Source: Eutreptiella sp. 'Long Island Sound 2002'
Taxonomy: Eukaryota > Protista > Euglenida
DNA: 64,000 nucleotides
Assembly (NCBI GenBank): GCA_964036045.1
Contig: OZ038378.1
Coordinates: forward strand, 6,014,001 to 6,078,000
Direction of reading: 5' to 3'
A program made the translations under genes and the position numbers. The notes beneath the pieces were generated by a model that worked only from the letters and a program-made list of their open reading frames with translations, was not told the DNA's origin and made no database searches. Shown here piece after piece: positions 34,983 through 64,000 of this stretch (within the stretch, counting starts at the first letter, position 1; each line of letters begins with the position of its first letter).

Positions 34983-37633
34983 CTGCTGCAGGAACTAGCC
35001 CACTAGAAAATGGTACCGTGAATGCAGGACACCAACCAAACTATTGGAGCAACCAACAACCTTGACCGAAAAACTGAGATGAATAGTAAAACTAACCCGA
35101 CCGTGAGCCTGAAACCAACTGCAATTGTGCCGAAACTGCACTGCGGTTACAACCCGAAACAATAGTAGCCCCTTCTCCCTCTGTGGTGCCTCAGATTCAG
35201 CACAAGAAGAATTTTGCCTCTTGCAATTCAATCTGAAGCACCACAAGGGCACCCCAATCTTACTTTCACACAAAGGCATACCCTGTACTCACACACCTAG
35301 CACTATGCACCGTTTGCTGATCTCGTGCGTAGATCTAGTGTTGAATGGCGGCACCACTCGGGAAACAACGTGCTGAAAACACGAGCCGGCGAGCGGACAT
35401 AGGGGGATGGCGTACTTAAGCACTGCAAAATGTTTATGCTCGGAGGTCATGGCCACTGGAGAACGCTCCCTTTTCTTTCTTTGCCGGCCGCCCTTTCAAG
35501 AAAGGGTTTCGTTCCATCACTGGTGAGTAGACGTTAGAAATTGCGTGTACGATGTGACGAGATGTTTGTGGAATAGACTTTATCTATCAGCACCATCGGC
35601 GGGAACGGACACATGACATGCAATTGTCTTTCAAAAGGTGAGACACACCGCACAACGCCTTAACACATGGGTGGCAGAGCAGTTGGGACATTCCCCAACG
35701 GAAGCGCAAAATATTGGTGCGATGAATTGTAGAAATATGTCATGAGCAAACGAGAGGACCGTTGGGCTGCGAGCTGTGGTCACGGGAAGGGCGGACCTAG
35801 ATATATGCGATCCTCATTGTATCCGATGAAAACTATCGCGGTAGAGGTTGGGGAAATTGTGGCCAAGGCGCTGCCACAATTTGCGCGCTCTTTGTTGGAA
35901 ATGAACACCAAACAACGTACCATGGGAAAGTTCCACCGCAAAGCAACGGCCGAGGACGTGCAACTACCTTCTCACATGCCCCATAGTGAGGAGCAATACA
36001 AGTGACTGCAGGATGCCGACCTGCAACGGGGCTGGTGGCGGGCGTCCAAAATGCCGAAAATACCTTTCTGTTTTTGCGGCCCCAAAAGCAAATGAGAATC
36101 AAATTGTCACCTCCTAGATTGTGCCTAGGTTCCGCCCCCACCAGCGGCGTTCGGCCTCCAACCGCCGCCTGCGTTCGTCGGCTAGTGCCGCTAGGAAGTT
36201 GCGTTTGTATTTTTGTGTTGTCGTGTTTTTTTGTATTTGGGTGTGTGCATTTTTTGTGTGGCGTTGCTCCCATAGGAAGAACAGATTGGCAGTGAAGGCT
36301 CACTTCTCGAGGTCATGAAGCTCAGCCTTCTCGGATCACAACAATGAGGGCAACTGCAAGTGGCAACAAGACCCCCACGGGCTCCGGCTCCCCAAAGTGT
36401 GGAAGAATCAAAGCAGCTACATTACCATTGGCTTGTCAGTGTTCGCAGAGTGGCAAAGCACCTTGCACCACGCTCTCTTTTCTTTCTTTGCCGGCCGCCC
36501 TTTCAAGAAAAGGTTTCGTTCCATCACTGGTGAGTAGACATTAGAAATTGCGTGTACGATGTGACGAGATGTTTGTGGAATACAACACCGGCAACTTTAT
36601 CTATCAGCACCATCACAGGAGACGGGATGAGCCATATGACATGTTTTGAATGCGGCGGGAACGGACACATGACATGCAATTGTCTTTCAAAAGGTGAGAC
36701 ACACCGCACAACGCCGCAACACATGGGTGGCAGAGCAGTTGGGACATTCCCCAACGGAAGCGCAAAATATTGGTGCGATGAATTGTAGAAATATGTCATG
36801 AGCAAACGAGAGGACCGTTGGGCTGCTTGCTGTGGTCACGGGAGGGACGGACCTAGATATATGCGATCCTCATTGTATCCGATGAAAACTATCGCGGTAG
36901 AGGTTGGGGAAATTGTGGCCGAGGCGCTGCCACAATTTGCGCGCTCTTTGTTGGAAATGAACACCAAACAACGTACCATGGGAAAGTTCCACCGCAAAGC
37001 AACGGCCGAGGACGTGCAACTACCTTCTCACATGCCCCATGGTGAGGAGCAATACAAGTCACTGCAGGATGCCGACCTGCAACGGGGCTCGCGGGTATGT
37101 TCTTGGAATCCCCAAGCTAGCAGGCATCAAAAATGCCGAAAATACCTTTCTATTGTTGCGGCCCCAAAAGCAAATGAGAATCAAATTGTCACCTCCGAGA
37201 TTGTGCTTGGCTCCCGCCCCCACCAGCGGCGTTCGGCCTCCAACCGCCGCCTGCGTTCGTCGGCTAGAGCCCCTAGGGAGTTGCGTTTGTGTTTTTGTGT
37301 TGTCGTGTTTTTTTGTATTTGGGTGTGTGCATTTTTTGTGTGGCGTTGCTCCCATAGGAAGAACAGATTGGCAGTGAAGGCTCACTTCTCGAGGCCATGA
37401 AGCTCAGCCTTCTCGGATCACAACAATGAGGGCAACTGCAAGTGGCAACAAGACCCCCACGGGCTCCGGCTCCCCAAAGTGTGGAAGAATCAAAGCCGCT
37501 ACATTACCATTGGCTTGTCAGTGTTCGCAGAGTGGCAAAGCACCTTGCACCACGCTCTCTTTTCTTTCTTTGCCGGCCGCCCTTTCAAGAAAAGGTTTCG
37601 TTCCATCACTGGTGAGTAGACATTAGAAATTGC

Positions 37634-38143
37634 GTGTACGATGTGACGAGATGTTTGTGGAATACAACACCGGCAACTTTATCTATCAGCACCATCACAG
37701 GAGACGGGATGAGCCATATGACATGTTTTGAATGCGGCGGGAACGGACACATGACATGCAATTGTCTTTCAAAAGGTGAGACACACCGCACAACGCCGCA
37801 ACACATGGGTGGCAGAGCAGTTGGGACATTCCCCAACGGAAGCGCAAAATATTGGTGCGATGAATTGTAGAAATATGTCATGAGCAAACGAGAGGACCGT
37901 TGGGCTGCGTGCTGTGGTCACGGGAGGGGCGGACCTGGATATATGCGATCCTCATTGTATCCGATGAAAACTATCGCGGTAGAGGTCGGGGAAATTGTGG
38001 CCGAGGCGCTGCCACAATTTGCGCGCTCTTTGTTGGAAATGAACACCAAACAACGTACCATGGGAAAGTTCCACCACAAAGCAACGGCCGAGGACGTGCA
38101 GCTACCTTCTCACATGCCCCATAGTGAGGAGCAATACAAGTGA
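37634..38143 (+). pseudogene. CCHC zinc-knuckle (gag/ORF1-like) pseudo-ORF, one per array unit (unit 3 shown)
   Basis: 'CFECGGNGHMTCNC' is an exact C-X2-C-X4-H-X4-C. ORFs 37634-37870 and 37880-38143 are in the same frame and separated by a single TAG (…WCDEL*KYVMSKRED…). Confidence 0.6.
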
Positions 38144-41100
38144 CTGCAGGATGCCGACCTGCAACGGGGCTCGTGGGTATGTTCTTGGAATCCCCAAGCT
38201 AGCAGGCATCAAAAATGCCGAAAATACCTTTCTATTGTTGCGGCCCCAAAAGCAAATGAGAATCAAATTGTCACCTCCGAGATTGTGCCTAGGTTCCGCC
38301 CCCACTAGCGGCGTTCGGCCTCCAACCGCCGCCTGCGTTCGTCGGCTAGAGCCCCTAGGGAGTTGCGTTTGTATTTTTGTGTTGTCGTGTTTTTTTGTAT
38401 TTGGGTGTGTGCATTTTTTGTGTGGCGTTGCTCCCATAGGAAGAACAGATTGGCAGTGAAGGCTCACTTCTCGAGGTCATGAAGCTCAGCCTTCTCGGAT
38501 CACAACAATGAGGGCAACTGCAAGTGGCAACAAGACCCCCACGGGCTCCGGCTCCCCAAAGTGTGGAAGAATCAAAGCAGCTACATTACCATTGGCTTGT
38601 CAGTGTTCGCAGAGTGGCAAAGCACCTTGCACCACGCTCTCTTTTCTTTCTTTGCCGGCCGCCCTTTCAAGAAAAGGTTTCGTTCCATCACTGGTGAGTA
38701 GACATTAGAAATTGCGTGTACGATGTGACGAGATGTTTGTGGAATACAACACCGGCAACTTTATCTATCAGCACCATCACAGGAGACGGGATGAGCCATA
38801 TGACATGTTTTGAATGCGGCGGGAACGGACACATGACATGCAATTGTCTTTCAAAAGGTGAGACACACCGCACAACGCCGCAACACATGGGTGGCAGAGC
38901 AGTTGGGACATTCCCCAACGGAAGCGCAAAATATTGGTGCGATGAATTGTAGAAATATGTCATGAGCAAACGAGAGGACCGTTGGGCTGCGTGCTGTGGT
39001 CACGGGAGGGGCGGACCTGGATATATGCGATCCTCATTGTATCCGATGAAAACTATCGCGGTAGAGGTCGGGGAAATTGTGGCCGAGGCGCTGCCACAAC
39101 TTGCGCGCTCTTTGTTGGAAATGAACACCAAACAACGTACCATGGGAAAGTTCCACCGCAAAGCAACGGCCGAGGACGTGCAACTACCTTCTCACATGCC
39201 CCATAGTGAGGAGCAATACAAGTGACTGCAGGATGCCGACCTGCAACGGGGCTCGTGGGTATGTTCTTGGAATCCCCAAGCTAGCAGGCATCAAAAATGC
39301 CGAAAATACCTTTCTATTGTTGCGGCCCCAAAAGCAAATGAGAATCAAATTGTCACCTCCGAGATTGTGCCTAGGTTCCGCCCCCACCAGCGGCGTTCGG
39401 CCTCCAACCGCCGCCTGCGTTCGTCGGCTAGAGCCGCTAGGGAGTTGCGTTTGTATTTTTGTGTTGTCGTGTTTTTTTGTATTTGGGTGTGTGCATTTTT
39501 TGTGTGGCGTTGCTCCCATAGGAAGAACAGATTGGCAGTGAAGGCTCACTTCTCGAGGTCATGAAGCTCAGCCTTCTCGGATCACAACAATGAGGGCAAC
39601 TGCAAGTGGCAACAAGACCCCCACGGGCTCCGGCTCCCCAAAGTGTGGAAGAATCAAAGCAGCTACATTACCATTGGCTTGTCAGTGTTCGCAGAGTGGC
39701 AAAGCACCTTGCACCACGCTCTCTTTTCTTTCTTTGCCAGCCGCCCTTTCAAGAAAAGGTTTCGTTCCATCACTGGTGAGTAGACATTAGAAATTGCGTG
39801 TACGATGTGACGAGATGTTTGTGGAATACAACACCGGCAACTTTATCTATCAGCACCATCACAGGAGACGGGATGAGCCATATGACATGTTTTGAATGCG
39901 GCGGGAACGGACACATGACATGCAATTGTCTTTCAAAAGGTGAGACACACCGCACAACGCCGCAACACATGGGTGGCAGAGCAGTTGGGACATTCCCCAA
40001 CGGAAGCGCAAAATATTGGTGCGATGAATTGTAGAAATATGTCATGAGCAAACGAGAGGACCGTTGGGCTGCTTGCTGTGGTCACGGGAAGGGCGGACCT
40101 AGATATATGCGATCCTCATTGTATCCGATGAAAACTATCGCGGTAGAGGTTGGGGAAATTGTGGCCGAGGCGCTGCCACAACTTGCGCGCTCTTTGTTGG
40201 AAATGAACACCAAACAACGTACCATGGGAAAGTTCCACCACAAAGCAACGGCCGAGGACGTGCAGCTACCTTCTCACATGCCCCATAGTGAGGAGCAATA
40301 CAAGTGACTGCAGGATGCCGACCTGCAACGGGGCTGGTGGGTATGTTCTTGGAATCCCCAAGCTAGCAGGCATCAAAAATGCCGAAAATACCTTTCTATT
40401 GTTGCGGCCCCAAAAGCAAATGAGAATCAAATTGTCACCTCCGAGATTGTGCTTGGCTCCCGCCCCCACCAGCGGCGTTCGGCCTCCAGCCGCCGCCTGC
40501 GTTCGTCGGCTAGAGCCGCTAGGGAGTTGCGTTTGTATTTTTGTGTTGTCGTGTTTTTTTGTATTTGGGTGTGTGCATTTTTTGTGTGGCGTTGCTCCCA
40601 TAGGAAGAACAGATTGGCAGTGAAGGCTCACTTCTCGAGGCCATGAAGCTCAGCCTTCTCGGATCACAACAATGAGGGCAACTGCAAGTGGCAACAAGAC
40701 CCCCACGGGCTCCGGCTCCCCAAAGTGTGGAAGAATCAAAGCCGCTACATTACCATTGGCTTGTCAGTGTTCCCAGAGTGGCAAAGCACCTTGCACCACG
40801 CTCTCTTTTCTTTCTTTGCCGGCCGCCCTTTCAAGAAAAGGTTTCGTTCCATCACTGGTGAGTAGACATTAGAAATTGCGTGTACGATGTGACGAGATGT
40901 TTGTGGAATACAACACCGGCAACTTTATCTATCAGCACCATCACAGGAGACGGGATGAGCCATATGACATGTTTTGAATGCGGCGGGAACGGACACATGA
41001 CATGCAATTGTCTTTCAAAAGGTGAGACACACCGCACAACGCCGGAACACATGGGTGGCAGAGCAGTTGGGACATTCCCCAACGGAAGCGCAAAATATTG

Positions 41101-43046
41101 GTGCGATGAATTGTAGAAATATGTCATGAGCAAACGAGAGGACCGTTGGGCTGCGAGCTGTGGTCACGGGAAGGGCGGACCTGGATATATGCGATCCTCA
41201 TTGTATCCGATGAAAACTATCGCGGTAGAGGTCGGGGAAATTGTGGCCGAGGCGCTGCCACAATTTGCGCGCTCTTTGTTGGAAATGACCACCAAACAAC
41301 GTACCATGGGAAAGTTCCACCGCAAAGCAACGGCCGAGGACGTGCAGCTACCTTCTCACATGCCCCATAGTGAGGAGCAATACAAGTGACTGCAGGATGC
41401 CGACCTGCAACGGGGCTGGTGGGTATGTTCTTGGAATCCCCAAGCTAGCAGGCATCAAAAATGCCGAAAATACCTTTCTATTGTTGCGGCCCCAAAAGCA
41501 AATGAGAATCAAATTGTCACCTCCGAGATTGTGCCTAGCTTCCGCCCCCACCAGCGGCGTTCGGCCTCCAACCGCCGTTTGCGTTCGTCGGCTAGAGCCG
41601 CTAGGGAGTTGCGTTTGTATTTTTGTGTTGTCGTGTTTTTTTGTATTTGGGTGTGTGTATTTTTTGTGTGGCGTTGCTCCCATAGGAAGAACAGATTGGC
41701 AGTGAAGGCTCACTTCTCGAGGCCATGAAGCTCAGCCTTCTCGGATCACAACAATGAGGGCAACTGCAAGTGGCAACAAGACCCCCACGGGCTCCGGCTC
41801 CCCAAAGTGTGGAAGAATCAAAGCAGCTACATTACCATTGGCTTGTCCACGTTCGCAGAGTAGCAAAGCACCTTGCACCACGCTCTCTTTTCTTTCTTTG
41901 CCGGCCGCCCTTTCAAGAAAAGGTTTCGTTCCATCACTGGTGAGTAGACATTAGAAATTGCGTGTACGATGTGACGAGATGTTTGTGGAATACAACACCG
42001 GCAACTTTATCTATCAGCACCATCACAGGAGACGGGATGAGCCATATGACATGTTTTGAATGCGGCGGGAACGGACACATGACATGCAATTGTCTTTCAA
42101 AAGGTGAGACACACCGCACAACGCCGCAACACATGGGTGGCAGAGCAGTTGGGACATTCCCCAACGGAAGCGCAAAATATTGGTGCGATGAATTGTAGAA
42201 ATATGTCATGAGCAAACGAGAGGACCGTTGGGCTGCGTGCTGTGGTCACGGGAGGGGCGGACCTGGATATATGCGATCCTCATTGTATCCGATGAAAACT
42301 ATCGCGGTAGAGGTTGGGGAAATTGTGGCCAAGGCGCTGCCACAATTTGCGCGCTCTTTGTTGGAAATGACCACCAAACAACGTACCATGGGAAAGTTCC
42401 ACCACAAAGCAACGGCCGAGGACGTGCAGCTACCTTCTCACATGCCCCATAGTGAGGAGCAATACAAGTGACTGCACGATGCCGACCTGCAACGGGGCTG
42501 GTGGGTATGTTCTTGGAATCCCCAAGCTAGCAGGCATCAAAAATGCCGAAAATACCTTTCTATTGTTGCGGCCCCAAAAGCAAATGAGAATCAAATTGTC
42601 ACCTCCGAGATTGTGCCTAGCTTCCGCCCCCACTAGCGGCGTTCGGCCTCCAACCGCCGCCTGCGTTCGTCGGCTAGAGCCCCTAGGGAGTTGCGTTTGT
42701 ATTTTTGTGTTGTCGTGTTTTTTTGTATTTGGGTGTGTGCATTTTTTGTGTGGCGTTGCTCCCATAGGAAGAACAGATTGGCAGTGAAGGCTCACTTCTC
42801 GAGGCCATGAAGCTCAGCCTTCTCGGATCACAACAATGAGGGCAACTGCAAGTGGCAACAAGACCCCCACGGGCTCCGGCTCCCCAAAGTGTGGAAGAAT
42901 CAAAGCCGCTACATTACCATTGGCTTGTCAGTGTTCGCAGAGTGGCAAAGCACCTTGCACCACGCTCTCTTTTCTTTCTTTGCCGGCCGCCCTTTCAAGA
43001 AAAGGTTTCGTTCCATCACTGGTGAGTAGACATTAGAAATTGCGTG

Positions 43047-43234
43047 CTCTCTTTTGCTCGCTCGCTCATCCTCGATTGCTTCCATCTGAACATAAGAGGG
43101 AATTTCGTCTGGCCGCACTGGCATAGGTGTGTATTGACTGCAGTGCTTTTTGCGCTACAGGCTTCGGAGGTCAAGCGCAAGAAAGCGCAGGATTGGAATG
43201 CCAAGCGTGTCAAAACGCCAAGGTTTGGCCCCTC
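43047..43234 (+). other. 188-bp segment present only in array unit 8
   Basis: Lies exactly between gaaattgcgtg and tacgatgtgacg with no TSD. It contains a branch-like ttgac, a pyrimidine tract and ctacAG (43160), and its 3' part is in frame with the knuckle ORF (ORF 43127-43468). Confidence 0.9.
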
Positions 43235-46200
43235 TACGATGTGACGAGATGTTTGTGGAATACAACACCGGCAACTTTATCTATCAGCACCATCACAGGA
43301 GACGGGATGAGCCATATGACATGTTTTGAATGCGGCGGGAACGGACACATGACATGCAATTGTCTTTCAAAAGGTGAGACACACCGCACAACGCCGCAAC
43401 ACATGGGTGGCAGAGCAGTTGGGACATTCCCCAACGGAAGCGCAAAATATTGGTGCGATGAATTGTAGAAATATGTCATGAGCAAACGAGAGGACCGTTG
43501 GGCTGCGAGCTGTGGTCACGGGAAGGGCGGACCTGGATATATGCGATCCTCATTGTATCCGATGAAAACTATCGCGGTAGAGGTTGGGGAAATTGTGGCC
43601 GAGGCGCTGCCACAACTTGCGCGCTCTTTGTTGGAAATGACCACCAAACAACGTACCATGGGAAAGTTCCACCGCAAAGCAACGGCCGAGGACGTGCAGC
43701 TACCTTCTCACATGCCCCATAGTGAGGAGCAATACAAGTGACTGCACGATGCCGACCTGCAACGGGGCTGGTGGGTATGTTCTTGGAATCCCCAAGCTAG
43801 CAGGCATCAAAAATGCCGAAAATACCTTTCTATTGTTGCAGCCCCAAAAGCAAATGAGAATCAAATTGTCACCTCCGAGATTGTGCCTAGCTTCCGCCCC
43901 CACTAGCGGCGTTCGGCCTCCAACCGCCGCCTGCGTTCTTCGGCTAGAGCCGCTAGGGAGTTGCGTTTGTATTTTTGTGTTGTCGTGTTTTTTTGTATTT
44001 GGGTGTGTGCATTTTTTGTGTGGCGTTGCTCCCATAGGAAGAACAGATTGGCAGTGAAGGCTCACTTCTCGAGGCCATGAAGCTCAGCCTTCTCGGATCA
44101 CAACAATGAGGGCAACTGCAAGTGGCAACAAGACCCCCACGGGCTCCGGCTCCCCAAAGTGTGGAAGAATCAAAGCCGCTACATTACCATTGGCTTGTCA
44201 GTGTTCGCAGAGTGGCAAAGCACCTTGCACCACGCTCTCTTTTCTTTCTTTGCCGGCCGCCCTTTCAAGAAAAGGTTTCGTTCCATCACTGGTGAGTAGA
44301 CATTAGAAATTGCGTGTACGATGTGACGAGATGTTTGTGGAATACAACACCGGCAACTTTATCTATCAGCACCATCACAGGAGACGGGATGAGCCATATG
44401 ACATGTTTTGAATGCGGCGGGAACGGACACATGACATGCAATTGTCTTTCAAAAGGTGAGACACACCGCACAACGCCGCAACACATGGGTGGCAGAGCAG
44501 TTGGGACATTCCCCAACGGAAGCGCAAAATATTGGTGCGATGAATTGTAGAAATATGTCATGAGCAAACGAGAGGACCGTTGGGCTGCGAGCTGTGGTCA
44601 CGGGAAGGGCGGACCTGGATATATGCGATCCTCATTGTATCCGATGAAAACTATCGCGGTAGAGGTCGGGGAAATTGTGGCCGAGGCGCTGCCACAATTT
44701 GCGCGCTCTTTGTTGGAAATGAACACCAAACAACGTACCATGGGAAAGTTCCAGCGCAAAGCAACGGCCGAGGACGTGCAGCTACCTTCTCACATGCCCC
44801 ATAGTGAGGAGCAATACAAGTGACTGCACGATGCCGACCTGCAACGGGGCTGGTGGGTATGTTCTTGGAATCCCCAAGCTAGCAGGCATCAAAAATGCCG
44901 AAAATACCTTTCTATTGTTGCGGCCCCAAAAGCAAATGAGAATCAAATTGTCACCTCCAAGATTGTGCTTGGCTCCCGCCCCCACCAGCGGCGTTCGGCC
45001 TCCAACCGCCGCCTGCGTTCGTCGGCTAGAGCCGCTAGGGAGTTGCGTTTGTATTTTTGTGTTGTCGTGTTTTTTTGTATTTGGGTGTGTGCATTTTTTG
45101 TGTGGCGTTGCTCCCATAGGAAGAACAGATTGGCAGTGAAGGCTCACTTCTCGAGGTCATGAAGCTCAGCCTTCTCGGATCACAACAATGAGGGCAACTG
45201 CAAGTGGCAACAAGACCCCCACGGGCTCCGGCTCCCCAAAGTGTGGAAGAATCAAAGCCGCTACATTACCATTGGCTTGTCAGTGTTCGCAGAGTGGCAA
45301 AGCACCTTGCACCACGCTCTCTTTTCTTTCTTTGCCGGCCGCCCTTTCAAGAAAAGGTTTCGTTCCATCACTGGTGAGTAGACATTAGAAATTGCGTGTA
45401 CGATGTGACGAGATGTTTGTGGAATACAACACCGGCAACTTTATCTATCAGCACCATCACAGGAGACGGGATGAGCCATATGACATGTTTTGAATGCGGC
45501 GGGAACGGACACATGACATGCAATTGTCTTTCAAAAGGTGAGACACACCGCACAACGCCGCAACACATGGGTGGCAGAGCAGTTGGGACATTCCCCAACG
45601 GAAGCGCAAAATATTGGTGCGATGAATTGTAGAAATATGTCATGAGCAAACGAGAGGACCGTTGGGCTGCGAGCTGTGGTCACGGGAAGGGCGGACCTGG
45701 ATATATGCGATCCTCATTGTATCCGATGAAAACTATCGCGGTAGAGGTTGGGGAAATTGTGGCCAAGGCGCTGCCACAATTTGCGCGCTCTTTGTTGGAA
45801 ATGAACACCAAACAACGTACCATGGGAAAGTTCCACCACAAAGCAACGGCCGAGGACGTGCAGCTACCTTCTCACATGCCCCATAGTGAGGAGCAATACA
45901 AGTGACTGCAGGATGCCGACCTGCAACGGGGCTGGTGGGTATGTTCTTGGAATCCCCAAGCTAGCAGGCATCAAAAATGCCGAAAATACCTTTCTATTGT
46001 TGCGGCCCCAAAAGCAAATGAGAATCAAATTGTCACCTCCGAGATTGTGCGTAGCTTCCGCCCCCACTAGCGGCGTTCGGCCTCCAACCGCCGCCTGCGT
46101 TCGTCGGCTAGAGCCGCTAGGGAGTTGCGTTTGTATTTTTGTGTTGTCGTGTTTTTTTGTATTTGGGTGTGTGCATTTTTTGTGTGGCGTTGCTCCCATA

Positions 46201-49200
46201 GGAAGAACAGATTGGCAGTGAAGGCTCACTTCTCGAGGCCATGAAGCTCAGCCTTCTCGGATCACAACAATGAGGGCAACTGCAAGTGGCAACAAGACCC
46301 CCACGGGCTCCGGCTCCCCAAAGTGTGGAAGAATCAAAGCCGCTACAGTACCGTTGGCTTGTCAGTGTTCGCAGAGTGGCAAAGCACCTTGCACCACGCT
46401 CTCTTTTCTTTCTTTGCCGGCCGCCCTTTCAAGAAAAGGTTTCGTTCCATCACTGGTGAGTAGACATTAGAAATTGCGTGTACGATGTGACGAGATGTTT
46501 GTGGAATACAACACCGGCAACTTTATCTATCAGCACCATCACAGGAGACGGGATGAGCCATATGACATGTTTTGAATGCGGCGGGAACGGACACATGACA
46601 TGCAATTGTCTTTCAAAAGGTGAGACACACCGCACAACGCCGCAACACATGGGTGGCAGAGCAGTTGGGACATTCCCCAACGGAAGCGCAAAATATTGGT
46701 GCGATGAATTGTAGAAATATGTCATGAGCAAACGAGAGGCCCGTTGGGCTGCGAGCTGTGGTCACGGGAAGGGCGGACCTGGATATATGCGATCCTCATT
46801 GTATCCGATGAAAACTATCGCGGTAGAGGTCGGGGAAATTGTGGCCGAGGCGCTGCCACAACTTGCGCGCTCTTTGTTGGAAATGAACACCAAACAACGT
46901 ACCATGGGAAAGTTCCACCGCAAAGCAACGGCCGAGGACGTGCAGCTACCTTCTCACATGCCCCATAGTGAGGAGCAATACAAGTGACTGCACGATGCCG
47001 ACCTGCAATGGGGCTGTTGGGTATGTTCTTGGAATCCCCAAGCTAGCAGGCATCAAAAATGCCGAAAATACCTTTCTATTGCTGCGGCCCCAAAAGCAAA
47101 TGAGAATCAAATTGTCACCTCCGAGATTGTGCTTGGCTCCCGCCCCCACCAGCGGCGTTCAGCCTCCAACCGCCGCCTGCGTTCGTCGGCTAGAGCCGCT
47201 AGGGAGTTGCGTTTGTATTTTTGTGTTGTAGTGTTTTTTTGTATTTGGGTGTGTGCATTTTTTGTGTGGCGTTGCTCCCATAGGAAGAACAGATTGGCAG
47301 TGAAGGCTCACTTCTCGAGGCCATGAAGCTCGGCCTTCTCGGATCACAACAATGAGGGCAACTGCAAGTGGCAACAAGACCCCCACGGGCTCCGGCTCCC
47401 CAAAGTGTGGAAGAATCAAAGCAGCTACATTACCATTGGCTTGTCAGTGTTCGCAGAGTGGCAAAGCACCTTGCACCACGCTCTCTTTTCTTTCTTTGCC
47501 AGCCGCCCTTTCAAGAAAAGGTTTCGTTCCATCACTGGTGAGTAGACATTAGAAATTGCGTGTACGATGTGACGAGATGTTTGTGGAATACAACACGGGC
47601 AACTTTATCTATCAGCACCATCACACGAGACGGGATGAGCCATATGACATGTTTTGAATGCGGCGGGAACGGACACATGACATGCAATTGTCTTTCAAAA
47701 GGTGAGACACACCGCACAACGCCGCAACACATGGGTGGCAGAGCAGTTGGGACATTCCCCAACGGAAGCGCAAAATATTGGTGCGATGAATTGTAGAAAT
47801 ATGTCATGAGCAAACGAGAGGACCGTTGGGCTGCGTGCTGTGGTCACGGGAAGGGCGGACCTGGATATATGCGATCCTCATTGTATCCGATGAAAACTAT
47901 CGCGGTAGAGGTCGGGGAAATTGTGGCCGAGGCGCTGCCACAACTTGCGCGCTCTTTGTTGGAAATGAACACCAAACAACATACCATGGGAAAGTTCCAC
48001 CGCAAAGCAACGGCCGAGGACGTGCAACTACCTTCTCACATGCCCCATAGTGAGGAGCAATACAAGTGACTGCAGGATGCCGACCTGCAACGGGGCTGGT
48101 GGGTATATTCTTGGAATCCCCAAGCTAGCAGGCATCAAAAATGCCGAAAATACCTTTCTATTGTTGCAGCCCCAAAAGCAAATGAGAATCAAATTGTCAC
48201 CTCCGAGATTGTGCCTGGCTCCCGCCCCCACCAGCGGTGTTCGGCCTCCAACCGCCGCATGCGTTCGTCGGCTAGAGCCGCTAGGGAGTTGCGTTTGTAT
48301 TTTTGTGTTGCCGTGTTTTGTTGTATTTGGGTGTGTGCATTTTTTGTGTGGCGTTGCTCCCATAGGAAGAACAGATTGGCAGTGAAAGCTCACTTCTCGA
48401 GGCCATGAAGCTCGGCCTTCTCGGATCACAACAATGAGGGCAACTGCAAGTGGCAACAAGACCCCCACGGGCTCCGGCTCCCCAATACATTACCATTGGC
48501 TTGTCAGCGTCCGCAAAGTGGCGAAGCACCTTGCTGGAACACCGTTGCGTTCGCAGCACACCCAAATTCGGAAGGAACCAAAGAGCCTCAATAGCCCCCG
48601 CTCTCCCCGTGTACCAAAGTCCGGAAGAATTCAAAGTGGATCTATCGCCCTTGCCTTTGCAATGTCCTCCAAGTGGTGAAAAATGAAATTGGGTACTCAA
48701 CCCTTGTGTACTGGGGCTGAGTAGGTTGGGTTCCAATTCAAGTGCCTACATCACCCCTTGCTTGCAAGCGTGAGTGTGGGAACCAAATGGGTTGCATACA
48801 TCACCCTCGCCTTTGTAGTGTGCCCCAATTGGAGAGGAATCAAACTTACTACAAAACCATTGCCTCTTGGGAGGACTAAAAAGGGGGCAGATTGAAATTC
48901 GTTTATCACTCCCATGATATGCATCGGTCTCGAGGTGTTGCTTCCAGGCAGTTGTCAACGCGTACGTGGATGCAGCCAGAATTGCCGCTTTGGATCTTAT
49001 GCGAACATAGGTATATTGTTGCTCTTGCCCGGTTCAACTCCTCATAGCACGCGAAGAGATAGACATTGCCGTGCAAGTTGAGTAGCGCGTTCTTGATGAT
49101 GAATTCAATAATTTTCCTTGATTTCGATTTGAGATGGGTGCGGCAAGGTGGAGGGCAGAAGACCAAGAGAGGAGACACGAAAAAATGAGATATATGGAGT

Positions 49201-52200
49201 TGGGAGGGAAAAGAAATGGTGTGTCGTATTGCAAGGACAGGGAGCAGCCAAGGGGAATACAGCCACTTCGATTTCTCTACATTTTGCAAACCCACTTTCA
49301 TTCCTCTTCACCTTTTCTCAGTTGTGGCTGTCCCGGAAAGTGGAATTGGGTTGGAACAGGACGTGCAACAAGGCATAGGCCAGCATGCACCAGTGTACAC
49401 ACAAACATAGAGACATTTTTACCCCATCTTTTCTCCTCTATTGCACTGTTCAACGACGCTGATGCCGTCAGTCGGCAACACCCCAACTATTTCGTAGCGG
49501 AGTTCTAGTTTGGCGGAGCCTTGGCGCATTGCATGGTTGTGTTTTGTTTGTAGCTTCACCTCACTATTGTATCTTTGAACACCAGCGATTAAGGCGCTTT
49601 GTTGTTCCCAAGTGTCACCCCCTTACTTTGCAAACCAGGATAAGGCACGGGTGATGTCGCCACGTTCCTTCCTCCCCACTTTGTGGACGTCCAGAAGGCA
49701 GCAGTGATGTGATTCCTCCTCATTTGGGGGACCTAGAGAATTATGTAACCATACTGATTCTTCCCCACCGTGGATACCTTAGGACGACAAGGGTTGTTCC
49801 ACCACTTCCCTTCGTCTCCATGAACGGGACGCCGACAAGGCAATGGGTATCTAGCCTTTTGCCGTTATCTCTACTTTGGCGACTCCGAGAAGGGACGGTT
49901 CATGTAGCCACAGTGGTTCCTCCCCACTTTCCGTCCCTTATGGAGACAGTGGATTGTTGCACTTCTCCCCACTTTCTAGACCCTCGGAATGCAGGGTGCA
50001 TGTGGTCGCTTCCATTCCTCCCTACTTCCGGGACCCCAAGGAGGCGACGCCGATGTACACACTTTGAATGGTGCCCAATCATGGTAACGTGAGAAGATGA
50101 CGGTGATGCACTGACTTTCTTGCCTACCCACTTTCGGGAGAGTACTGAGGTAGGTGACACCAAGAAGACACTTGTGGCCGTAACATGGATAGGACAAGGG
50201 CCGTGCGAGCACTTAGATTTGAGGGAACAACAGCAGCTACAACACCCCTATCTTCTTGGGGGTACAAACTTGACAACCCGGGCCGGCAGGGACCCGGAAA
50301 AACTTCAAAATTTTCACTGTTGGCCTATGTGGCCAACGGTGAAATTCACACAAAAATTTAATCTCCCAAAACTGCACTGTGGGAGGCATATTTCATAATG
50401 TTTCACTGTCAGCAGTGAAGCAGCAACTGACATGGAAGCATTGAGGTGTGATGGACAACACCCCCGCCCCCCCTTCATTCCATCCCATCTGCGGCTGTGC
50501 ACCAACAACGACGAACAACTTCCCCTGTGACAAACGAGTGTACCTAAAGGAGCAACAAAAAACATAGGTAGGGCACTTGCGCACACAGTGTAGCTGCATG
50601 TGTAGACGCATATTCGTGATAAAAACCGCTAGCACTGGCAAATGACATCAGCAAGGGAGAGACTGTCATTGTTAATAGTGAGACAGAGGTTTATACTGCA
50701 CTTTGAGGTGCAACTTGCAAACAACAGACCAGATATATGACCCTCTAGGTGAAACTCAGATAGAAGATAAACAGTACGCGGCCGCTACAATGAAGTACAG
50801 TGCAAATACAAAGGGACAGTGTCATATGTCCGTGCAGTCCAAGAAAGAGGCGGAAGGGTACAATTCATGGTTTATAAATGAGCGTTCGTGTCTGATGGAA
50901 AACAAAAGCACACTCCAATGTAGTGCAATTCCGGACAAAACTGTGCAGTAGGTCATCACAGAGCAGTGCAGTGACACGAAAAAATCTAACACTGGTTTCA
51001 GGCATTTCGGGCACATGTGTCATTATGGTCATTATGGCAGTGTGTTTCACAACTGACAGTGAAAGCACACTATGATGACTCAAAGGTGCAATTGCATTCA
51101 AGAGGGGGGACAGGGAGTGACTTTGATTGTCAACTATAAATCACAAGGTGACCTAGGCCACAACGTATTACAGGATGCTTTCGCAATGGCACATAGATCA
51201 TAATGACACAAATAGCATACAATCACAGAGCATTTTCACTGTTGACAGTGAAACCCCTTGGAGAACAAAGGTCCAAAATGGGGGACAGTGCATACACTGA
51301 CCGGCATGTAGTGCAATGTGCTGTGCGCGCGGTGCATGAAGCTTGTGGTCTCCCTTGCTCTTGCCTGTTGTCGGTCGGTCGTCCGTGCACCGCGCATTCA
51401 AGAGGGGGCAGCATGATATTACTGATGGTGCAATCAACATTGAAGACACATCCATGTAAGGTGGCAAGGGTTATGCAGCCACTTTGATTCTTTCCCCCTT
51501 TTGGGGGATCCCTGAGACAGCAGGGGTTACGTAGCCACTTTGCCCAAGTTGAGGCCCCGGAGATGGCAGGGGTTATGTAGCCACTTTGATTTTATACTGG
51601 TGCAAAATTAATTGCCGCCTTTATTGTGCATCCCTTGGCAGAAGGAACCGGTACAAGTAAACGAGCAGCAAGAGACACGATGTTGCAGGTCCAGGGCACA
51701 CAATGTCATCTTTAGGACCAGCTCGTTGCTTTGCGCCTTGTGTTCAACAACACATTTAGCAATTTGAAAACAGCCGGAACAACGTGAACCCAGTATCTGG
51801 TGTGATGGTGCCAAACCAAAACCAACGCTCTATTGACAACCAAAGACAAATACTGATTTCAACCAAATTGCCTACACCAAACTGTCAATGTTGACAGTGA
51901 AAACCCGTTAGAAAGGGTGCCTCAAAAATCCAATGTCATGGTGTTTTGGGCTATTCTTCTCCTACTTGTGGCTCCTCCTTGCTCTCTGTAGGATCCTGTA
52001 AAATGCATGACCGGTGATCTGCATGTGGAGCCCCGGAACCCGGACCAGGCGGTCACCTTCACAACCGAATCTAGTGAAGTGCCTCCAGAAAAGTGGGGCC
52101 TCAGTGGCGTTAATGGTGAAAAAAAAGATTATAGCTCTGAGGCGTCAAAGGCAGATAACATACAGACAGAACAAGCAGATAGCAACCAATGGTTTAACTG

Positions 52201-52619
52201 TTGACAGTGAAAATCAATCGTGAGAAGGTGTCAGGTAGCGGAAAATCAGAGCGGCACAACTTGTGCGGAGGTAGGTGACCCCAAGAAGACACCCGTAGCT
52301 GTAACATGGAGAGGATAAGGGATGTGCGACCGCTCAGATTGGGGGTAACAACAACAGCTGCAGTACCCCTATCTTCTTCTATATTGGATACCTGACCCGA
52401 TGCTAACCACTTTGATTTGTCCTTGCTTATGGGAGCCCGACAAGGCAACCGTGATACACCCATTTTTGAGTCCTCCCAGTTTGCGGACCCCAAGAACGCT
52501 GCGGTAGCGCGAACCCTGCGAGGATGGTGTTATGTTCCCGACTTGATTCTTGCCCACATTGGGGGGCCCCGAGAAGGCACAGGTAATTTAGGCAATTGAC
52601 CTCCTTCCCTCTTTGGGGA

Positions 52620-53043
52620 CGCCTCAGAGGGCAAGGGTGATGTTGCCATTTTGATGTCCTGAGATTTTTCTGAGGATACCGCTACCGGGGCGTGCTCAAG
52701 GTGCGTAGTATGAGGGATCAAAGCGGTTCCATCACCTTCGTCATGCGGGTGTCCTCCAAGTGAAGAGGAATCAAGCTGAGCGTACCTTCTCAGGGTACGG
52801 CAGAGTGCACGGGAAGCAAGTAGCTAGATAAGCACGGGCTTCTTTGATCCCCCAACGTAGGGTGTAATGAAATTGGCCGAACGAAGGGTTAATGAAACTA
52901 GTTTGCTTGCTCTCCACCTCGGTCACGCCGAAAAGGCCACTTTTGGCTATCAACATGGTTCTCCTCATCTTGGGGACCCAGGAATGCAACGGTGCTATCA
53001 CAACTTTGATTCCTCTACAAAGTTGTACCTCGCCAAGGCAAGC
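52620..53043. repeat. Block inverted relative to its paralogue at 58972-59410
   Basis: The reverse complement of 52981-53043 (cttgccttggcgaggtacaactttgtagaggaatcaaagttgtgatagcaccgttgc) matches 58972 onward, whereas adjacent 52270-52400 matches 58820-58970 directly. Confidence 0.85.
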
Positions 53044-56000
53044 ACTGCTGCCTACTTGAGGCCGCAAAAGTGGGGAACAAGGAAGGTGCTTGCATAACCC
53101 TTGCGTGCTAGGTTCTCCAAAGTGCGGAGGGATACAAGTGGTTGCAACACCATTGTATGCCCCGAGTCCTAAAAGAGTGGAGGGTTGAAAGGGAGCTCAT
53201 CACCATTGCCCTCTTCATGTCCCCAAGGGGGCGAGGAACAAAGGGGAGAGGAACCATAGTGGCTACATTAGCCTTGCTTCCTTGGCGAATCAATACTGCG
53301 AAGGAAGCAAACGGGCTACACCACCTGCCTCTTCTCGGAGGACCCAACATTGGCTGTACTAAAAGTGGCTACATCACAGTTACCTTCCCCATATCTCCAA
53401 AGTATGGAGCAATGACATTATCTATTGAAACCTTGGCTGCTCCGGGTAGACTGGGAACACATTGAAGTGGCGACACCAAAAAAGGGGAGCAACTCGGCTG
53501 TATACACCACCCCTCCCTTCCCATAGTGCCCAAAATGGGGAGGAATCAAACCAGCTTACATAACCATTACCTTCTTAGGGGGTGTTTTTGGGATGCGCAC
53601 TACTTTTACGGAGTGTCTTCCCATTGCGGCCTTGACTTTTCCACGTCCCAAACTGGCCCCTTGAGAGGGAAAACACCTTGCTGAAAAGCAGGGTTGCTTG
53701 GTTGGAAAAGTGGGCAAAGCTCCGCGCCATGCACCTACTATGCACGGTGCTCCTCCTTATGGTACTGGAGGCGGGGAGTACTGGAATGGGCGAAGAAACC
53801 ACTTCCCTCTATGGGTCCTCAAAGTGGGGAGGAATCAAAGTGCCTTTGCACACCTGCCCCGCCAACAAACCCCACCTTGGGGACTACATGAATGCGGCAA
53901 TCGGGGACCACGGGGGGGATTGGTTTGAATCCGGGGCGGAGGGGGGGGCGGCATACTACAATCTCAAGGCACAATACCCTTGTGTTGTATTCTTCGTCCC
54001 CCACCCAATTGGTGGAATAGTGTGTATTGATGGTATTGTATAGCTCTACCCTCCTTGTCATGATGATGGCTCTCAGATCAAAAGCCTACACGATGGAGGA
54101 GCCTCTAAATTGCTTGATGTTGAAGAAGATTGTGATGATGATATAGATGCTCATGCCGTTGTATTGCGTGCAGCACCTCGGGCTTGATGCCGTTATTAGT
54201 ACATGAACGCGTTGGAAGCAATCCACAAGACTAAAGCCACAGGGGCATCGAAGAATGCAATGAAAAAACATGTTCAAACCGCACCCTAGCAGTTGAAGGC
54301 CTAAATAGCAAAAGGAGGAGAAATCTATTTAGCTAGCAATGAAGACCCTTGCCCACACCGTAAATTTCTAATTTGCCATTACCTATCGGTTGCCAGATAT
54401 TGAAGGTAAACCAAAGTGTCCTTGGCTGCAAAAGCATCTGAATGAATATTGGAAGCTCGAAAATGTTGAAAAAAGAAAGCAATACCATATTGGACTTCAA
54501 AGGCTTTTGCCAAAACAACAAATCCGTATGAAGTTTCAACGTCACTGAATAGATCCCCTGCACAGAAAAAAGGGGAAAAGAAGGTGCAATCCAATAAGAA
54601 ACAACCATCAACGAGAAATGTGTTATAGATGGAGCAACAATCACAATTCTTTAACCACTTCATGCCCACTGTGCACATATTAGCCTTTTGTAAAAAAATG
54701 ACAACCAAGCTGTCTACTACACACATGAAATTCCTTGCAGTCTACACAGTCACATGAAACATGAAATCAAAGGTTGGCAAATCAGTGGACAACACCTGAT
54801 GCGAGATTGTCCCTATTCGCAGCGAAACACTTCAAACATAGCCTGACTGTGCTGTTGACCACACAAAGCTAAATGAAGCATCGTGTAGCTTTTTGGCCAC
54901 AAAGTTGTGTGCCGTGCAATTGGCAAAAGGTGCACAGGCTTTGGAAGACAAAAACGTTTTCCTACATTCGGCTACGAAATGTTTTTTGTACATTAGGCTA
55001 CCTACGGCCTCATCATGGCGGTTCTCACATTCCCTGAGGAGGAGGGGGGTTGATACCGTGCAGGATTTTGTTTGCGGGACCATCTCTAGGGGGGGGGTCA
55101 GAAAAAAGTGGGTCCTACAAAAAAAGGCTTTTTCTTCCCTTGTCGCACGTACCACACAACATCATGGTGTTCCCACAGCAAAACATGCCTTGGGCACCCG
55201 TTGGCGTCGTTGTTGCTTCAAGGTCCCCAACCTTGAGAACAACCAAAGTGGCTACGTCACCGCATTTTTTTGGCTATACGGGTGTGGGACATGAAGGAGA
55301 CAAAAAAAGTGGCCACAATATCGCTAGCTTCTCAAGCCGCGAACTCGGTGGTGGTCTATGTTGGCTATGTCACCCTTGCCTTCTCGTGGTTTCTAAAGTG
55401 GAGAGGAATCATAGAAAGCTACATCCCCCTTCTTCCTCGGGCTGCCCAAATCGGTGATGATCACTATTGGCTACGCCACCGCTTCATCGGGTAACACTTA
55501 CATCACCCAAGCCTTCTTCAGATCCCCCAGAGGGGAAGAAAACTGCTGCGTAGCAATATCTCCTTGTCTCCAAAGTACGGAAGAATGAAAGTGCTTACGC
55601 CATGCTTGCATTCTCAGCCTATCGCAAAGTGGGGAGCAATCAAAGCGACTGCACAACCCTACCATCCCGAGTTTCTCAAAATTGGGGGGGGGTCCCCTTG
55701 GTGAGGAGGAATCAACGCAGCCAAACACCCGTTGCCTTGTCCCGGTCATGAAAGTGGGGAGGAAAGCAAGAGGCTGGATCACGCCTACCTTCATTGTATC
55801 TTCAAAGCAAGAAGCCATCCAAGTGGATACATCCGCCGGACTTCTCAAGGTTGCCGAAATGGAACTGGGGTTGCATCCAATTGGCTACATCATTCTCTCC
55901 ACCTAGGCTCCCCAAAGTGGGGGTATGTCAAACCACCTACACCACTCCGACCTTCTCGAGGTCCCCAAGGTCGGGTGATTTCTGATTGGCAACGCCAATG

Positions 56001-58192
56001 GCACCTTATTGGGCTCCCCAAAGTGGAGACAAATACAAAATGCTATGTCACCTCTACCCTTTAGGGTCCCCAAAGCGTTGAGGACCTAGTGTAGCCACAT
56101 TACTTGTGTCTTGTAGGGCTCCATGAAGTGAAGGGAGCAATTGGCAATGGAATGTTGTCTTTTGCGGTGCCCAAAAATGATGAGGAATTCACGTGCCTAC
56201 ATCACCCATACCAATACCTTCTGAGCATGCCGAATGTGGCGAGGAACCAAAGCGTCCACATCACTATTACTTTCTCGCGGGTTTTGAAAGTAGGGAGGAA
56301 TCAAAGTGGCTATATCACCCGTGCCATCACAAGTTGCCCAAAGTGGAGAGGAAACAGGAAAACTACAACAACGGTGCCTTTCGGGGTCCCCAAATTGGGG
56401 AAGGTTGCAACTAGCTACATCACCATGCCATCCCACGGTCCCCGTGTTGCGGGTGATTCAAAGTGGCAACATTTCAGGGCAACTTTCTCCTCTACGCATC
56501 CCTTCCGCCGCTTATGTACCTACAAGCGTTCTTCCGGTTTGTTGGAGTGGAGTGATTTCACTCCAACCTACTGAGATGACCAAGTTAAAATGATGCCGTA
56601 AAGCTTTCGTTTTTTGCAGGGTGATGGAGGTGGAAATGTTTCTCGAACGAGAAGTGAAATTGCTATTCCTGCCACAAAAAAAGGGACACTTTCTATGTTT
56701 AGTTTGATTGGTTTCATGAAAGCACTACATGGATTCCAATGTATAAGACTACGGAGTACACAACACAGTGGTCAAACGAAACAAATAAAGCCAACTAGGA
56801 TAAAAAAAAGTGTCACAGACAATGCAAAGCAATCAAAGTGGCTACACCGACCTTGCCTTCTCGGCGTCCCGAAAATGCCAAGGAAAGCAAGTGGCTGCAT
56901 CAGCGGTGCCTCTTCAAGGATCCGCAAAAGGGGAGGACTCAAAGTGGCTATATCACACCTACCTTCTCACATGCCCCAAAGTGAGGAGGAATACAAGTGA
57001 CTGCATGATGCCGACCCATAGTGGGTCTGGTGGGTATATTCTTGGAATCCCAAAGCTAGCAGGCGTCAAAAATGCCGAAATAACCTTTCTGTTGTTGCGG
57101 TCCTAAAAGCAAATAAGAATCAAATTGGCCATCATCATGGCTGACTTCTCGAGGTCATGAAGGTAGGGAGCAATGCCCATGGCTACATAGGCTCTGCCTT
57201 CTCGGATCACAACAATGAGGGCAACTGCAAGTGGCAACAAGACCCCCACGGGCTCCGGCTCCCCAAAGTGTGGAAGAATCAAAGCAGCTACATTACCATT
57301 GGCTTGTCAGCATCCGTAGAGTGGCAAAGCACCATGCCACGACAAGGTTGCTTTCTCAGCACACCCGAATTCGGAAGGAACCAAAGAGACTGAATAGCCC
57401 CCGCTCTCCCCGCGTACCAAAGTCCGGAAGAATTCAAAATGGATCTATCGCCCTTGCCTTTTCAATGTCCTCCAATTGGTGAAAAATAAAATTGGCTACC
57501 CAACCCTTGTGTACTGGGGCTGAGTAGGTTGGGTTCCAAGTCAAGTGCCTACATCACCCCTTGCTTGCAAGCGTGAGTGTGGGAACCAAATGGGTTGCAT
57601 ACATCACCCTCGCCTTTGTAGTGTGCCCCAATTGGAGAGGAATCAAACTTACTACAAAACCATTGCCTCTTGGGAGGACTAAAAAGGGGGCAGATTGAAA
57701 TTCGTTTATCACTCCCATGATATGCATCGGCCTCGAGGTGTTGCTTCGAGGCGGTTGTCAACGCGTACCTGGATGCAGCCAGAATTGCCGCTTTGGATCT
57801 TATGCGAACAGAGGTATGACAATTGTTGCTCTTGCCGGGTTTAACACCGAAGAGATAGACATTGCTTTGCAAGTTGAGTAATGCGTTCTTGACCATAAAT
57901 TTAACAATTTTCCTTCATTGTGAACTGAGATGGGTGCGGCAAGGTGGAGGGCACAAGACCAAGAGAGGAGACACAAAAGAATGAGATATATGGAGTTGGG
58001 AGGGAAAAGAAATGGTGTGTTGTATTGCAAGCACAAGGAGCAGCCAAGGGGAATATAGCCACTTCGATTTCTCTACATTTTGGAGACCCACGTTTATTCC
58101 TCTTCACCCTTTCTCAGTTGTCATTGTCCTGAAAGGTGGAATTGGGTTGGGATAGGACCTGCAACAAGGCATAGGCCCGCATGCACAAGCGT

Positions 58193-58216
58193 ACACACAC
58201 ACACACACACACACAC
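58193..58216. repeat. Short (AC)n microsatellite
   Basis: Direct reading; expanded relative to the paralogous positions at ~49397 and ~62648. Confidence 0.9.
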
Positions 58217-61200: not shown

Positions 61201-64000
61201 CACATCACCCATACCAATGCCTTCTGAGCATCCTGAATGTGGCGAGGAACCAAAGCGTCCACATCACTACTACTAGGATACTAGGCCTACTAGGATAAAA
61301 AAAAAATGGCCCAGAGAGTGCAATAAAAATCAAAGTGGCTACACCCACCTTGCCTTCTCGGCGTCCCAAAAATGCCAAGGAAAGCAAGTGGCTGCATCAG
61401 CGGTGCCTTTTCAAGGATCCGCAAAAGGGGAGGACTCAAAGTGGCTATATCACACCTACCTTCTCACATGCCCCAAAGTGAGGAGGAATACAAGTGACTG
61501 CATGATGCCGACCCATAGTGGATCTGGTGGGTATATTCTTGGATCCCCAAGCTAGCACACGTCAAAAATGCCGAAATAACCTTTCTGTTGTTGCGGTCCC
61601 AAAAGCAAATAAGAATCAAATTGGCGATCATCATGGCTGACTTCTCGAGGTCATGAGGGTAGGGAGCAATGCCCATGGCTACATAGGCTTGGCCTTCTCG
61701 GATCACAAAATTGAGGACGAATCCAAGTGGCAACAAGACCCCCAGGGGCTCCGGCTCCCCAAACTGTGGAGCAATGAAAGCAGCTACATTGCCATTCGCT
61801 TGTAAGCGTCGGCAAAGTGGCAAAGCACCTTGCTACAACAAGGTTGCTTTCTCAGCACACCCAAATTCGGAAGGAACCAAAGAGACTCAATCGCCCCCGC
61901 TCTCCCGGTGTACAAAATTCGGGAAGGATTCGAAGTGGCTCTATCGCCCTTGCCTTTGAACAATGAAATTCGTTTCTCGACCCCCGTGTACTGGGGTTGA
62001 GTAGGTTGGGTTCCAAGTCAAGTGCCTACATCACCCCTTGCTTGCAAGCGTGAGACCCCCGCCTTTGTAGTGGGCCCCAATTGGAGAGGAATCAAACTTA
62101 CTACAAAACCATTGCCTCTTGGGAGGACTAAAAATGGGGTAGGTTGAAATTCGTTTATCACTCCCATGATATGCATCGACGTCACAGTGTTGCTTGTAGG
62201 CGGTTGTCAACGCGTACGTGGATGCAGCCGAAATTGCTGCTTTGGATCTTATGCGAACATAGGTATATTGTTGCTCTTGCACGATTCAACTCCTCATCGC
62301 ACGCAAAAAGATAGACATTGCTTTGCAAGTTGAGTAATGCGTTCTTGATGATGAATTTACAATTTTCCTTCATTGTGAACTGAGATGCGTGCGGCAAGGT
62401 GGAGGGCAAAAGACCAAGAGAGGAGACACAAAAGAATGAGACATATGGAGTTGGGAGGGAAAAGAAATGGTGTGCCGTATTGCAAGCACAGGGAGCAACC
62501 AAGAGCGATATAGCCACTTTGATTTCTCTACATTTTGGAGACCCACGTTTATTCCTCTTCACCTTTTCTCAGTTGTAGTTGTCCCGGAAAAGTGGAATTG
62601 GGTTGGGATAGGACGTGCAACAAAGGATAGACGAGCATGCACTAGTGTACACATAAATAGACACTTTTACCCAATTTGTCTTCTCTATTGCATTGTTCAA
62701 CAACCCCGATGTAGTCAGTCGGCAACATCCTAACTATTTCATAGCGGAGTTCTAGTTTGGCGAAGCCTTGGCGCATTGCATTGTTGTGTTTTGTTCGTAG
62801 CGTCACCTCACTATTGTATCTTTGAACACCGGCGATTAAGGCGCTTTGTTGTTCCTAAGGGTGACCCCCTTGCTTTGCAAACCAAGATAAGGCACGGGTG
62901 ATGTCGCCACGTTCATTCCTCACCACTTTGTGGACGTCCAGAAGGCACCAGTGATGTGATTCGTCCTCATTTGGGGGACCTAGAGAATTATGTAGCCATA
63001 CTTATTCTTCCCCACCGTGCTTACCTTGGGAGGACAAGGGTTGTTCCACCACTTCCCTTCGTCTCAATGAAGGTCGCCCCCATATTTTGATCGGGGTCCC
63101 TAAATGGGGTGATCCATACATATCCCCATGGCTTGATCCGGGTTTTCGGAGGTATTTCTCTGTATTTGAATCTTCATTTATGTCCCTGACACAAAATCTG
63201 ATTGGTTGGGATTGTTTTGTGTCGGTTTCGCCTCATGGGTACCCTTAGGTGTGCCTTTCTCTCTACTTTGGCGACTCCGAGAAGGCAGGGTTCATGTAGC
63301 CACAGTGGTTCCTCCCCACTTTCGGTCCCATCTGAAGCCAATGGATTGTTGCACTTCTCCCCACTTTCAAGACCCTAGGAACACAGGGTGCATGTAGCCG
63401 CTTCCATTCCTTCCTACCTCCGGGACCTCAAGGAGGCGGCACTGATGTACACACTTTGAGTCGTGCCCAGATGTGGTAACCTCACAAGGCAACGGTGATG
63501 CACTAACTTTCTTGCCTACTTGCTTTCGGGAAGGCACTGAGGTAGGTATACCCTTGTGTTGTATTCTTCGTCTCCCGCCCTATTGGTGGAATAGTGCGTA
63601 TTGATGGTATTGTATAGCTCTACTTTCCTTGTCATGGTGATGGCTCTCACATCGAAAGCCTACCAGATGGAGAGGCCTCTAAATTGGTTGATGTTGAAGA
63701 AGATTGTGATGATGATATATATGCTCAAGATGTTGTATTGCGTTCAGCACTTAGGGCTTGATGCCGTTATTAGTACATCAACGCGTTGGAAGCATGGCAG
63801 TAGGCTAATCCATATGCTTAGATGTACGTGTTAGGCTAACATTCCTAATGCATGATGTTGAAGTGGCCCATGATGATGCTAAGGTTGTGCATGCACATAA
63901 AATTGCTGTATGGGTTGGTGAGGCATTGGATGCCGCTTAAGATGATCGGATGAAGCAAGAATTCCTTCCAAAACCAAAGGCAGTCTCTTTTAAAACCTCA

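Follow-up and report, generated by a model that had tools for sequence, protein, structure and literature searches.

How does a tandem array come to exist at a single place in a genome, built from a unit that joins two unrelated sequences? This question is raised by a locus of the euglenid Eutreptiella sp. 'Long Island Sound 2002', for which all coordinates below refer to the 64,000-nt window that was analysed, corresponding to C1:6014001-6078000 of the 2.28-Gb assembly. A direct-repeat search of the window revealed 12 head-to-tail units with a start-to-start spacing of 1082 bp, and a first-pass annotation that had placed a 12-copy, 1082-bp array at 35463-48534 proved correct to the base. The marks of a macrosatellite, namely head-to-tail copies in a common register whose constant period is at least about 1 kb, are all present. 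Each unit consists of a left part, X', which is homologous to a dispersed transposable element (TE), and a right part, B', which opens a local segmental repeat; the unit is thus a composite of two unrelated sequences, as the annotation had claimed, and the two were already neighbours before amplification. The array is a locus-specific, TE-derived macrosatellite.

The units were delimited at ACGCTC for the comparison of lengths and identities. Nine of the 12 measured 1082 bp, the exceptions being units 1, 8 and 12 (Table 1), and pairwise comparison of all units gave identities of 96.3-99.5%, with the two edge units, 1 and 12, showing 96.3% to each other. At every internal boundary (11/11) the same 18-nt join, GCACCTTGC-ACC-ACGCTC, was found without a mismatch, which is what the first-pass annotation had described, and a search of the whole genome confined this exact join to the array, so that the occurrence of the same join elsewhere, named beforehand as grounds for refutation, was checked and not encountered. 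The boundary between X' and B' within the unit is equally sharp: homology to the first open reading frame (ORF1) of the TE ends at 48027 and B homology begins at about 48028, and a 30-mer spanning this boundary occurred 12 times genome-wide with up to 3 mismatches allowed, always inside the array. About 700 near-matches to the join, with 1-2 mismatches and the pattern GCACCTTGC[A/G]CCACTCTC, come from another repeat, abundant and unrelated (for example, loci L045-L052), whose flanks are conserved among its own copies and have nothing in common with the unit. A dispersed element carrying the join, as these near-matches had suggested, was rejected on the grounds of those unrelated flanks.

The bases around the join were then read against the outer boundaries of the array, which are ...GGAGA|ACGCTC on the left and ...CCTTGC|TGGAAC on the right. 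Since the right flank reads TGG past ...CCTTGC, the join is composed of CCTTGC, ACC and ACGCTC, with ACC as a 3-nt filler. The microhomology of about 3 bp (acg) that had been proposed for the join could not be recovered, the right flank reading TGG and the join bearing the ACC filler, and at the array locus ACG was found only on the X' side. At the right-hand site, copy 2 of the segmental repeat reads CACGAC and copy 3 reads TACAAC; an ancestral ACG may have stood there, but the majority of the three copies does not speak for it. The three bases after the nearest upstream GC recur in the filler (GCACC-TT-GC-ACC), and these 3 nt would fit a locally templated insertion, weak as evidence of that size must be.

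The origin of X' was traced by searching the genome with its translated pieces, which matched dispersed ORFs on many chromosomes. The closest relatives were five to seven ORFs of 208-369 amino acids (aa), five of them of 362-369 aa, with 45-51% identity, and more than 100 further matches were more distant. The best relative, L042 (C3:158334000-158343999), contains a 7.29-kb element at its positions 2145-9423 (C3:158336144-158343422), and the ORF1 fragment of X' was 47-48% identical at the aa level to residues 1-130 of its ORF1 (tblastn). In elements of the L042/L043 type, terminal repeat, leader and ORF1 codons 1-130 follow one another just as their homologues do in unit positions 1-550; the monomer is thus homologous to a dispersed element, which answers to a TE-derived tandem repeat. 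The monomer is not drawn wholly from that element, as unit positions 551-1079 belong to the neighbouring 4.5-kb segmental repeat. The ORF1 copy in the array keeps the CX2CX4HX4C spacing of a zinc knuckle but gave no Pfam hit; the knuckle is retained in 11 units and in the relatives, and is removed by the private deletions of unit 1. An in-frame TAA (44548-44550 in unit 9) is common to the ORF1 fragments of all units, none of the 84-, 112- and 200-aa ORFs of the unit matched Pfam, and the remainder of the element was not found by tblastn in the window plus 20 kb rightward. X' does not have the makeup of an exon-intron host gene, a reading suggested by GT-AG-like sites and rejected, since X' holds one continuous frame collinear with ORF1 of the dispersed element. 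By homology, X' is a truncated and already pseudogenised piece of a dispersed multi-ORF transposon, with no host gene fragment in it; of the earlier label "zinc-knuckle gene fragment", the zinc-knuckle ORF stands, and the host gene gives way to the ORFs of a dispersed multi-copy element.

The parent element itself carries direct terminal repeats around its coding region, as do long terminal repeat (LTR) retrotransposons and Penelope-like elements. In L042 these repeats are 262 bp long (2145-2406 and 9162-9423), and in the C6 copy (L039/L044) the upstream repeat measures 432 bp; given this variable length, they were likened to pseudo-LTRs. A further copy is present at L041 (C25). ORF1 of L042 (368 aa) starts with a zinc knuckle (PF00098, 31.9 bits against a cut-off of 20.8 bits) and is followed by ORFs of 653, 188 and 882 aa. 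Single-sequence and profile searches with the 653-aa and 882-aa ORFs gave no match in Pfam or PDB, and among 5.8 billion proteins the large ORFs had 3 homologues only. Neither a reverse transcriptase (RT) nor a GIY-YIG domain was confirmed in the family by the Pfam and PDB searches, and the AlphaFold model in the analysis of the element's enzyme had a pLDDT (predicted local distance difference test) of 35. The 882-aa ORF contains conserved stretches (FDLERMFPNI ... QSTGVGIGGxLSAANA ... GRFRDNIFV; alignment A1) that, in our own reading, may resemble RT palm motifs, with D-N replacing the usual D-D.

Both ends of the array were next compared with their paralogues. On the left, homology to L042 2145-2406 and to L043 crosses 35463|35464 unbroken into the flank; within 32464-35463 only 35247-35463 has other genomic matches (68-79%), and the rest of this flank is single-copy. 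On the right, copies 2 and 3 of the segmental repeat match the last unit and its flank (48025-50260) in collinear order. Continuity of X' with the left flank and of B' with the flank right of 48534, both proposed in the first-pass annotation, was thereby established. Collinearity of the paralogues thus holds at each outer boundary, from which an ancestral order of flank-X'-B'-flank follows, and the only new junction is the one that connects the end of B' to the start of X'.

B' constitutes the start of a local segmental repeat of about 4.5 kb, present in three copies that are 82-94% identical. Its matches at 56956-57127/57191-57337 and 61453-61623/61692-61833 show 87-96% identity, which confirms the homology proposed earlier to the family at 56950-57340 and 61455-61830. 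About 213 bp of B' (unit positions 720-932) are absent from copies 2 and 3. The 22 bp deleted in unit 12 are retained by both. A 53-bp satellite recurs in degenerate form in parts of the 4.5-kb repeat; a clean array of it exists on C9 (L055, C9:70747000-70756999, at about 70.748-70.756 Mb; 156 units in 10 kb, 85% matches), from which the degenerate units in B' likely descend. A separate macrosatellite on C1 (L056 and L057, C1:185120000-185139999), whose units of about 1.87 kb and about 3.23 kb are 88-98% identical across at least 18 kb, holds at C1:185.12-185.14 Mb a reverse-oriented relative (126-160 bp, 80-87%) of unit positions 764-911. Copy 2 also contains, at its positions 3249-3408 (about 60038-60197 of the window), a short dispersed repeat of about 160 bp with dozens of copies of about 80% identity genome-wide.

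The history of the array after its founding was examined through the variants among units. There were 72 variable columns, 45 of them singletons and 27 shared. If the units had arisen in one burst and mutated independently thereafter, 2.65 shared sites would be expected; none of 5000 simulations exceeded 10. All four gametes were observed at 138 of the 231 pairs of informative sites, and the shared-variant patterns are mosaic and interleaved along the array. The edge units lie 2.0-2.1% from the core consensus and the core units 0.65-1.4%. A single burst with independent decay is therefore rejected by the excess of shared sites, the mosaic patterns and the decay being greatest at the edges, and the variant pattern fits repeated unequal exchange and gene conversion. 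When copies 2 and 3 were used to polarise the B' variants, informative sites were few and the order of events did not emerge clearly. The array is younger than the triplication of the 4.5-kb repeat (about 6-18% diverged) yet not newborn. The first-pass annotation had called it a macrosatellite in formation from TE and gene debris: TE debris and a satellite-based repeat were indeed the raw material and a host gene was not, and edge units about 2% off the core, private deletions and many exchange events in the core speak against an array that is just forming.

Unit 8 is distinguished by a 188-bp insertion, which was 99% identical to C17:32188464-32188652 and 98% identical to C1:8586378-8586565, and which at both places lies inside a duplicated 3.2-kb sequence that comes after a (CT)n run. 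The other 11 units, both edges included, as well as L042 and L043, are continuous at the insertion site. The fragment was therefore captured recently, its absence from those units and relatives having led to the rejection of an ancestral sequence, and it looks more like a captured or templated patch of break repair than like a transposon insertion.

Collectively, these observations point to a history in which a 1079-bp segment was duplicated once, illegitimately and with a 3-nt filler, and in which unequal exchange and conversion then acted repeatedly, a reading to which we assign a probability of roughly 0.75. The ancestral locus held unique DNA and a truncated, pseudogenised copy of the element of about 7.3 kb, fused directly to the first copy of the segmental repeat of about 4.5 kb. 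A single illegitimate event would then have added a second 1079-bp copy head to tail, creating ...GCACCTTGC + ACC + ACGCTC...; the join itself attests to a single origin, and sister-chromatid end joining and replicative template switching are the candidate mechanisms. Out-of-register homologous exchange and short-tract gene conversion would subsequently have brought the array to 12 copies or more and homogenised the core, while both edge units would have escaped homogenisation and decayed; the variants record exchange, and its mechanism is presumed. Finally, unit 8 acquired its 188 bp as a copy from a C17-like locus. A single founding event with later unequal exchange had been among the proposals of the annotation, and the one join throughout and the variant pattern agree with it. 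Three points weigh against this reading: copy number and tandem continuity rest on one assembly; sister-chromatid end joining, template switching and a circle with homologous reintegration would be indistinguishable by sequence; and, no function having been demonstrated for the array, its apparent lack of function would be a default rather than a result.

The best-surviving alternative, which we consider improbable, is that the 1079-bp segment was excised, circularised by end joining at the ACC join, copied by rolling circle and reintegrated by homologous recombination, with conversion later. Euglena keeps its ribosomal DNA as extrachromosomal circles, and such a route would give an identical final structure, with one join throughout and edges continuous with both flanks. 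Plants provide documented cases of circles that arise from tandem repeats (PMC2543021). The route nevertheless takes more steps to the same product, no copy of the unit was found at any other locus in the genome searches, and, as a single burst alone fails on the 27 shared mosaic sites, it would still need unequal exchange or conversion. A compound proposal, that the array was founded and amplified via a 1.08-kb extrachromosomal circle or else is a transcribed, terminal-repeat-driven small-RNA or chromatin locus, would be a long shot; if true, circle-mediated or functional macrosatellite birth could be observed in a living case whose two parental flanks are still intact.

An assembly artefact, in which the assembler inflated a one- or two-copy locus or misjudged the copy number, is very unlikely even though tandem repeats are error-prone in assemblies: the units are told apart by their 72 variable sites, many of them common to subsets, by unit-specific indels and by the lone 188-bp insertion, a variant structure that collapsed or duplicated reads would not yield. 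The sole database protein from the array (P0004), a single sequence on a 2.2-Mb contig, is uninformative on this question. Odds smaller still are given to a maintained functional locus, for example one whose transcripts yield small RNAs against the X-element family or one that organises chromatin. The unit does hold three parts of a TE, the end of a terminal repeat, the leader and the 5' part of the coding region, and TE-derived tandem repeats such as CRM1TR/CRM4TR can be transcribed (PMC3648361); however, the Rfam search of the window returned no match, each unit contains just two weak inverted repeats of 15 nt, a protein identity of 45-51% to the nearest copies of the family would be too low for sequence-specific silencing, and the edge units decay freely. 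The notion that the 1082-bp unit is itself a composite element that moves or stacks itself is effectively refuted, given that neither X' nor either join nor the complete unit was found again in genome-wide searches, hence no copy at other loci with different flanks, that the joins carry no telomeric hexamers and that both array ends run on into the parental sequences.

Table 1. Positions, in the 64,000-nt window, of the array, its selected units and its flanking repeats.
Feature	Position	Strand	Basis or remark
Left flank: part of the terminal direct repeat of the X element lying outside the array, pseudo-LTR-like	35247..35463	+	Genomic matches, alignment
Tandem array, 12 units, period 1082 bp	35464..48534	+	Direct repeats, join search, unit alignment
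Edge unit 1 (u1), 1006 bp, joined to left flank	35464..36469	+	Private deletions of 1, 10, 39 and 26 bp
Unit 8 (u8), 1270 bp	42962..44231	+	Carries 188-bp insertion at 43047-43234
Captured fragment, 188 bp, unit 8 only, no target-site duplication	43047..43234	+	Genome matches, unit alignment
Reference unit 9 (u9): final ~49 bp of terminal repeat (unit positions 1-49)	44232..44280	+	Alignment A2
Reference unit 9: leader from terminal repeat to ORF1, 108 bp (unit positions 50-157)	44281..44388	+	Alignment
Reference unit 9: ORF1 codons 1-130, gag-like CCHC zinc knuckle (unit positions 158-550)	44389..44781	+	tblastn
Reference unit 9: B', 529 bp, opens local ~4.5-kb segmental repeat (unit positions 551-1079)	44782..45310	+	
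Reference unit 9: ACC filler, founding join (unit positions 1080-1082)	45311..45313	+	
Edge unit 12 (u12), 1057 bp, joined to right flank	47478..48534	+	Private 22-bp deletion, without ACC
Segmental repeat copy 1 (starts at 48025 inside u12), remainder with insertions and rearrangements	48535..56271	+	Partly degenerate 53-bp satellite
Segmental repeat copy 2	56790..61284	+	B' homologue 56956-57337
Segmental repeat copy 3, extends past the window to ~65161	61285..64000	+	B' homologue 61453-61833

Outside the array and its repeats, the window contains on the minus strand an ORF of the Rer1 family (670-1188; PF03248, 208 bits) and a GC-rich gene (up to 67%) with a Laminin_G_3 and two F5/8 type C domains (14151-19774); no recognisable gene was found from about 24 kb to 64 kb. 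A 24-nt query with the Euglena spliced-leader sequence gave 5458 genomic matches compared with 0 for the control; these were not confined to tandem clusters but scattered across the chromosomes on either strand, and none lay in the window.

Among known systems, the closest is that of maize CRM1TR and CRM4TR, which are retrotransposon-derived tandem repeats with LTR-UTR~LTR monomers, UTR standing for untranslated region (Sharma, Wolfgruber & Presting 2013, PMC3648361). There as here, the monomers begin within a terminal repeat and take in the leader or UTR, the arrays are locus-specific, and founding by illegitimate recombination (which for our array we infer) is followed by growth and variation through gene conversion and unequal exchange. 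In contrast, the maize monomers are wholly element-derived, whereas half of the unit described here is a non-TE neighbour and its join runs from TE to neighbour; moreover, the parent element is unclassified and has terminal repeats of variable length, the copies are far fewer and the host is a euglenid. Tandem dimers of TEs have likewise been described as satellite seeds (McGurk & Barbash 2018, PMC5932611), and transitions from TE to satellite have been reviewed (PMC9659126). That route resembles ours in that a rare founding event gives two head-to-tail copies from which unequal exchange builds an array, and differs in the founder, here a segmental duplication of a dead TE fragment with its flank rather than a double insertion of an active TE. 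With strict-sense satellite DNA, such as the 53-bp satellite on C9, the present array shares head-to-tail arrangement and descent, B' deriving from degenerate 53-bp units; however, its unit is a complex one of 1082 bp, and where a strict satellite is defined by copies in the hundreds to thousands, usually spread over several loci or placed in heterochromatin, it has 12 copies at one locus and none elsewhere.

In a published E. gracilis assembly 58.8% of the sequence is repeats and 9.85% is tandem repeats (PMC11252322), so that tandem arrays as such are common. The array reveals no new mechanism and no new kind of element; it is a clean but ordinary case of tandem-repeat birth, whose wider interest would grow only if array-derived circles, transcripts or small RNAs turned up. 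The dynamics of tandem arrays under unequal crossing-over were reportedly given their classical treatment by Smith in 1976, and an end-of-array effect is said to have been described by McAllister and Werren in 1999. The homogenised core, the divergent and decayed terminal units and the mosaic shared variants of our array are all features of this model, from which it does not differ in principle; it is simply very small, confined to a single locus and flanked on both sides by parental sequence that can still be read. As both parental sequences, the founding join and the exchange history are readable, the locus could serve as a teaching case for that model or as a strain marker.

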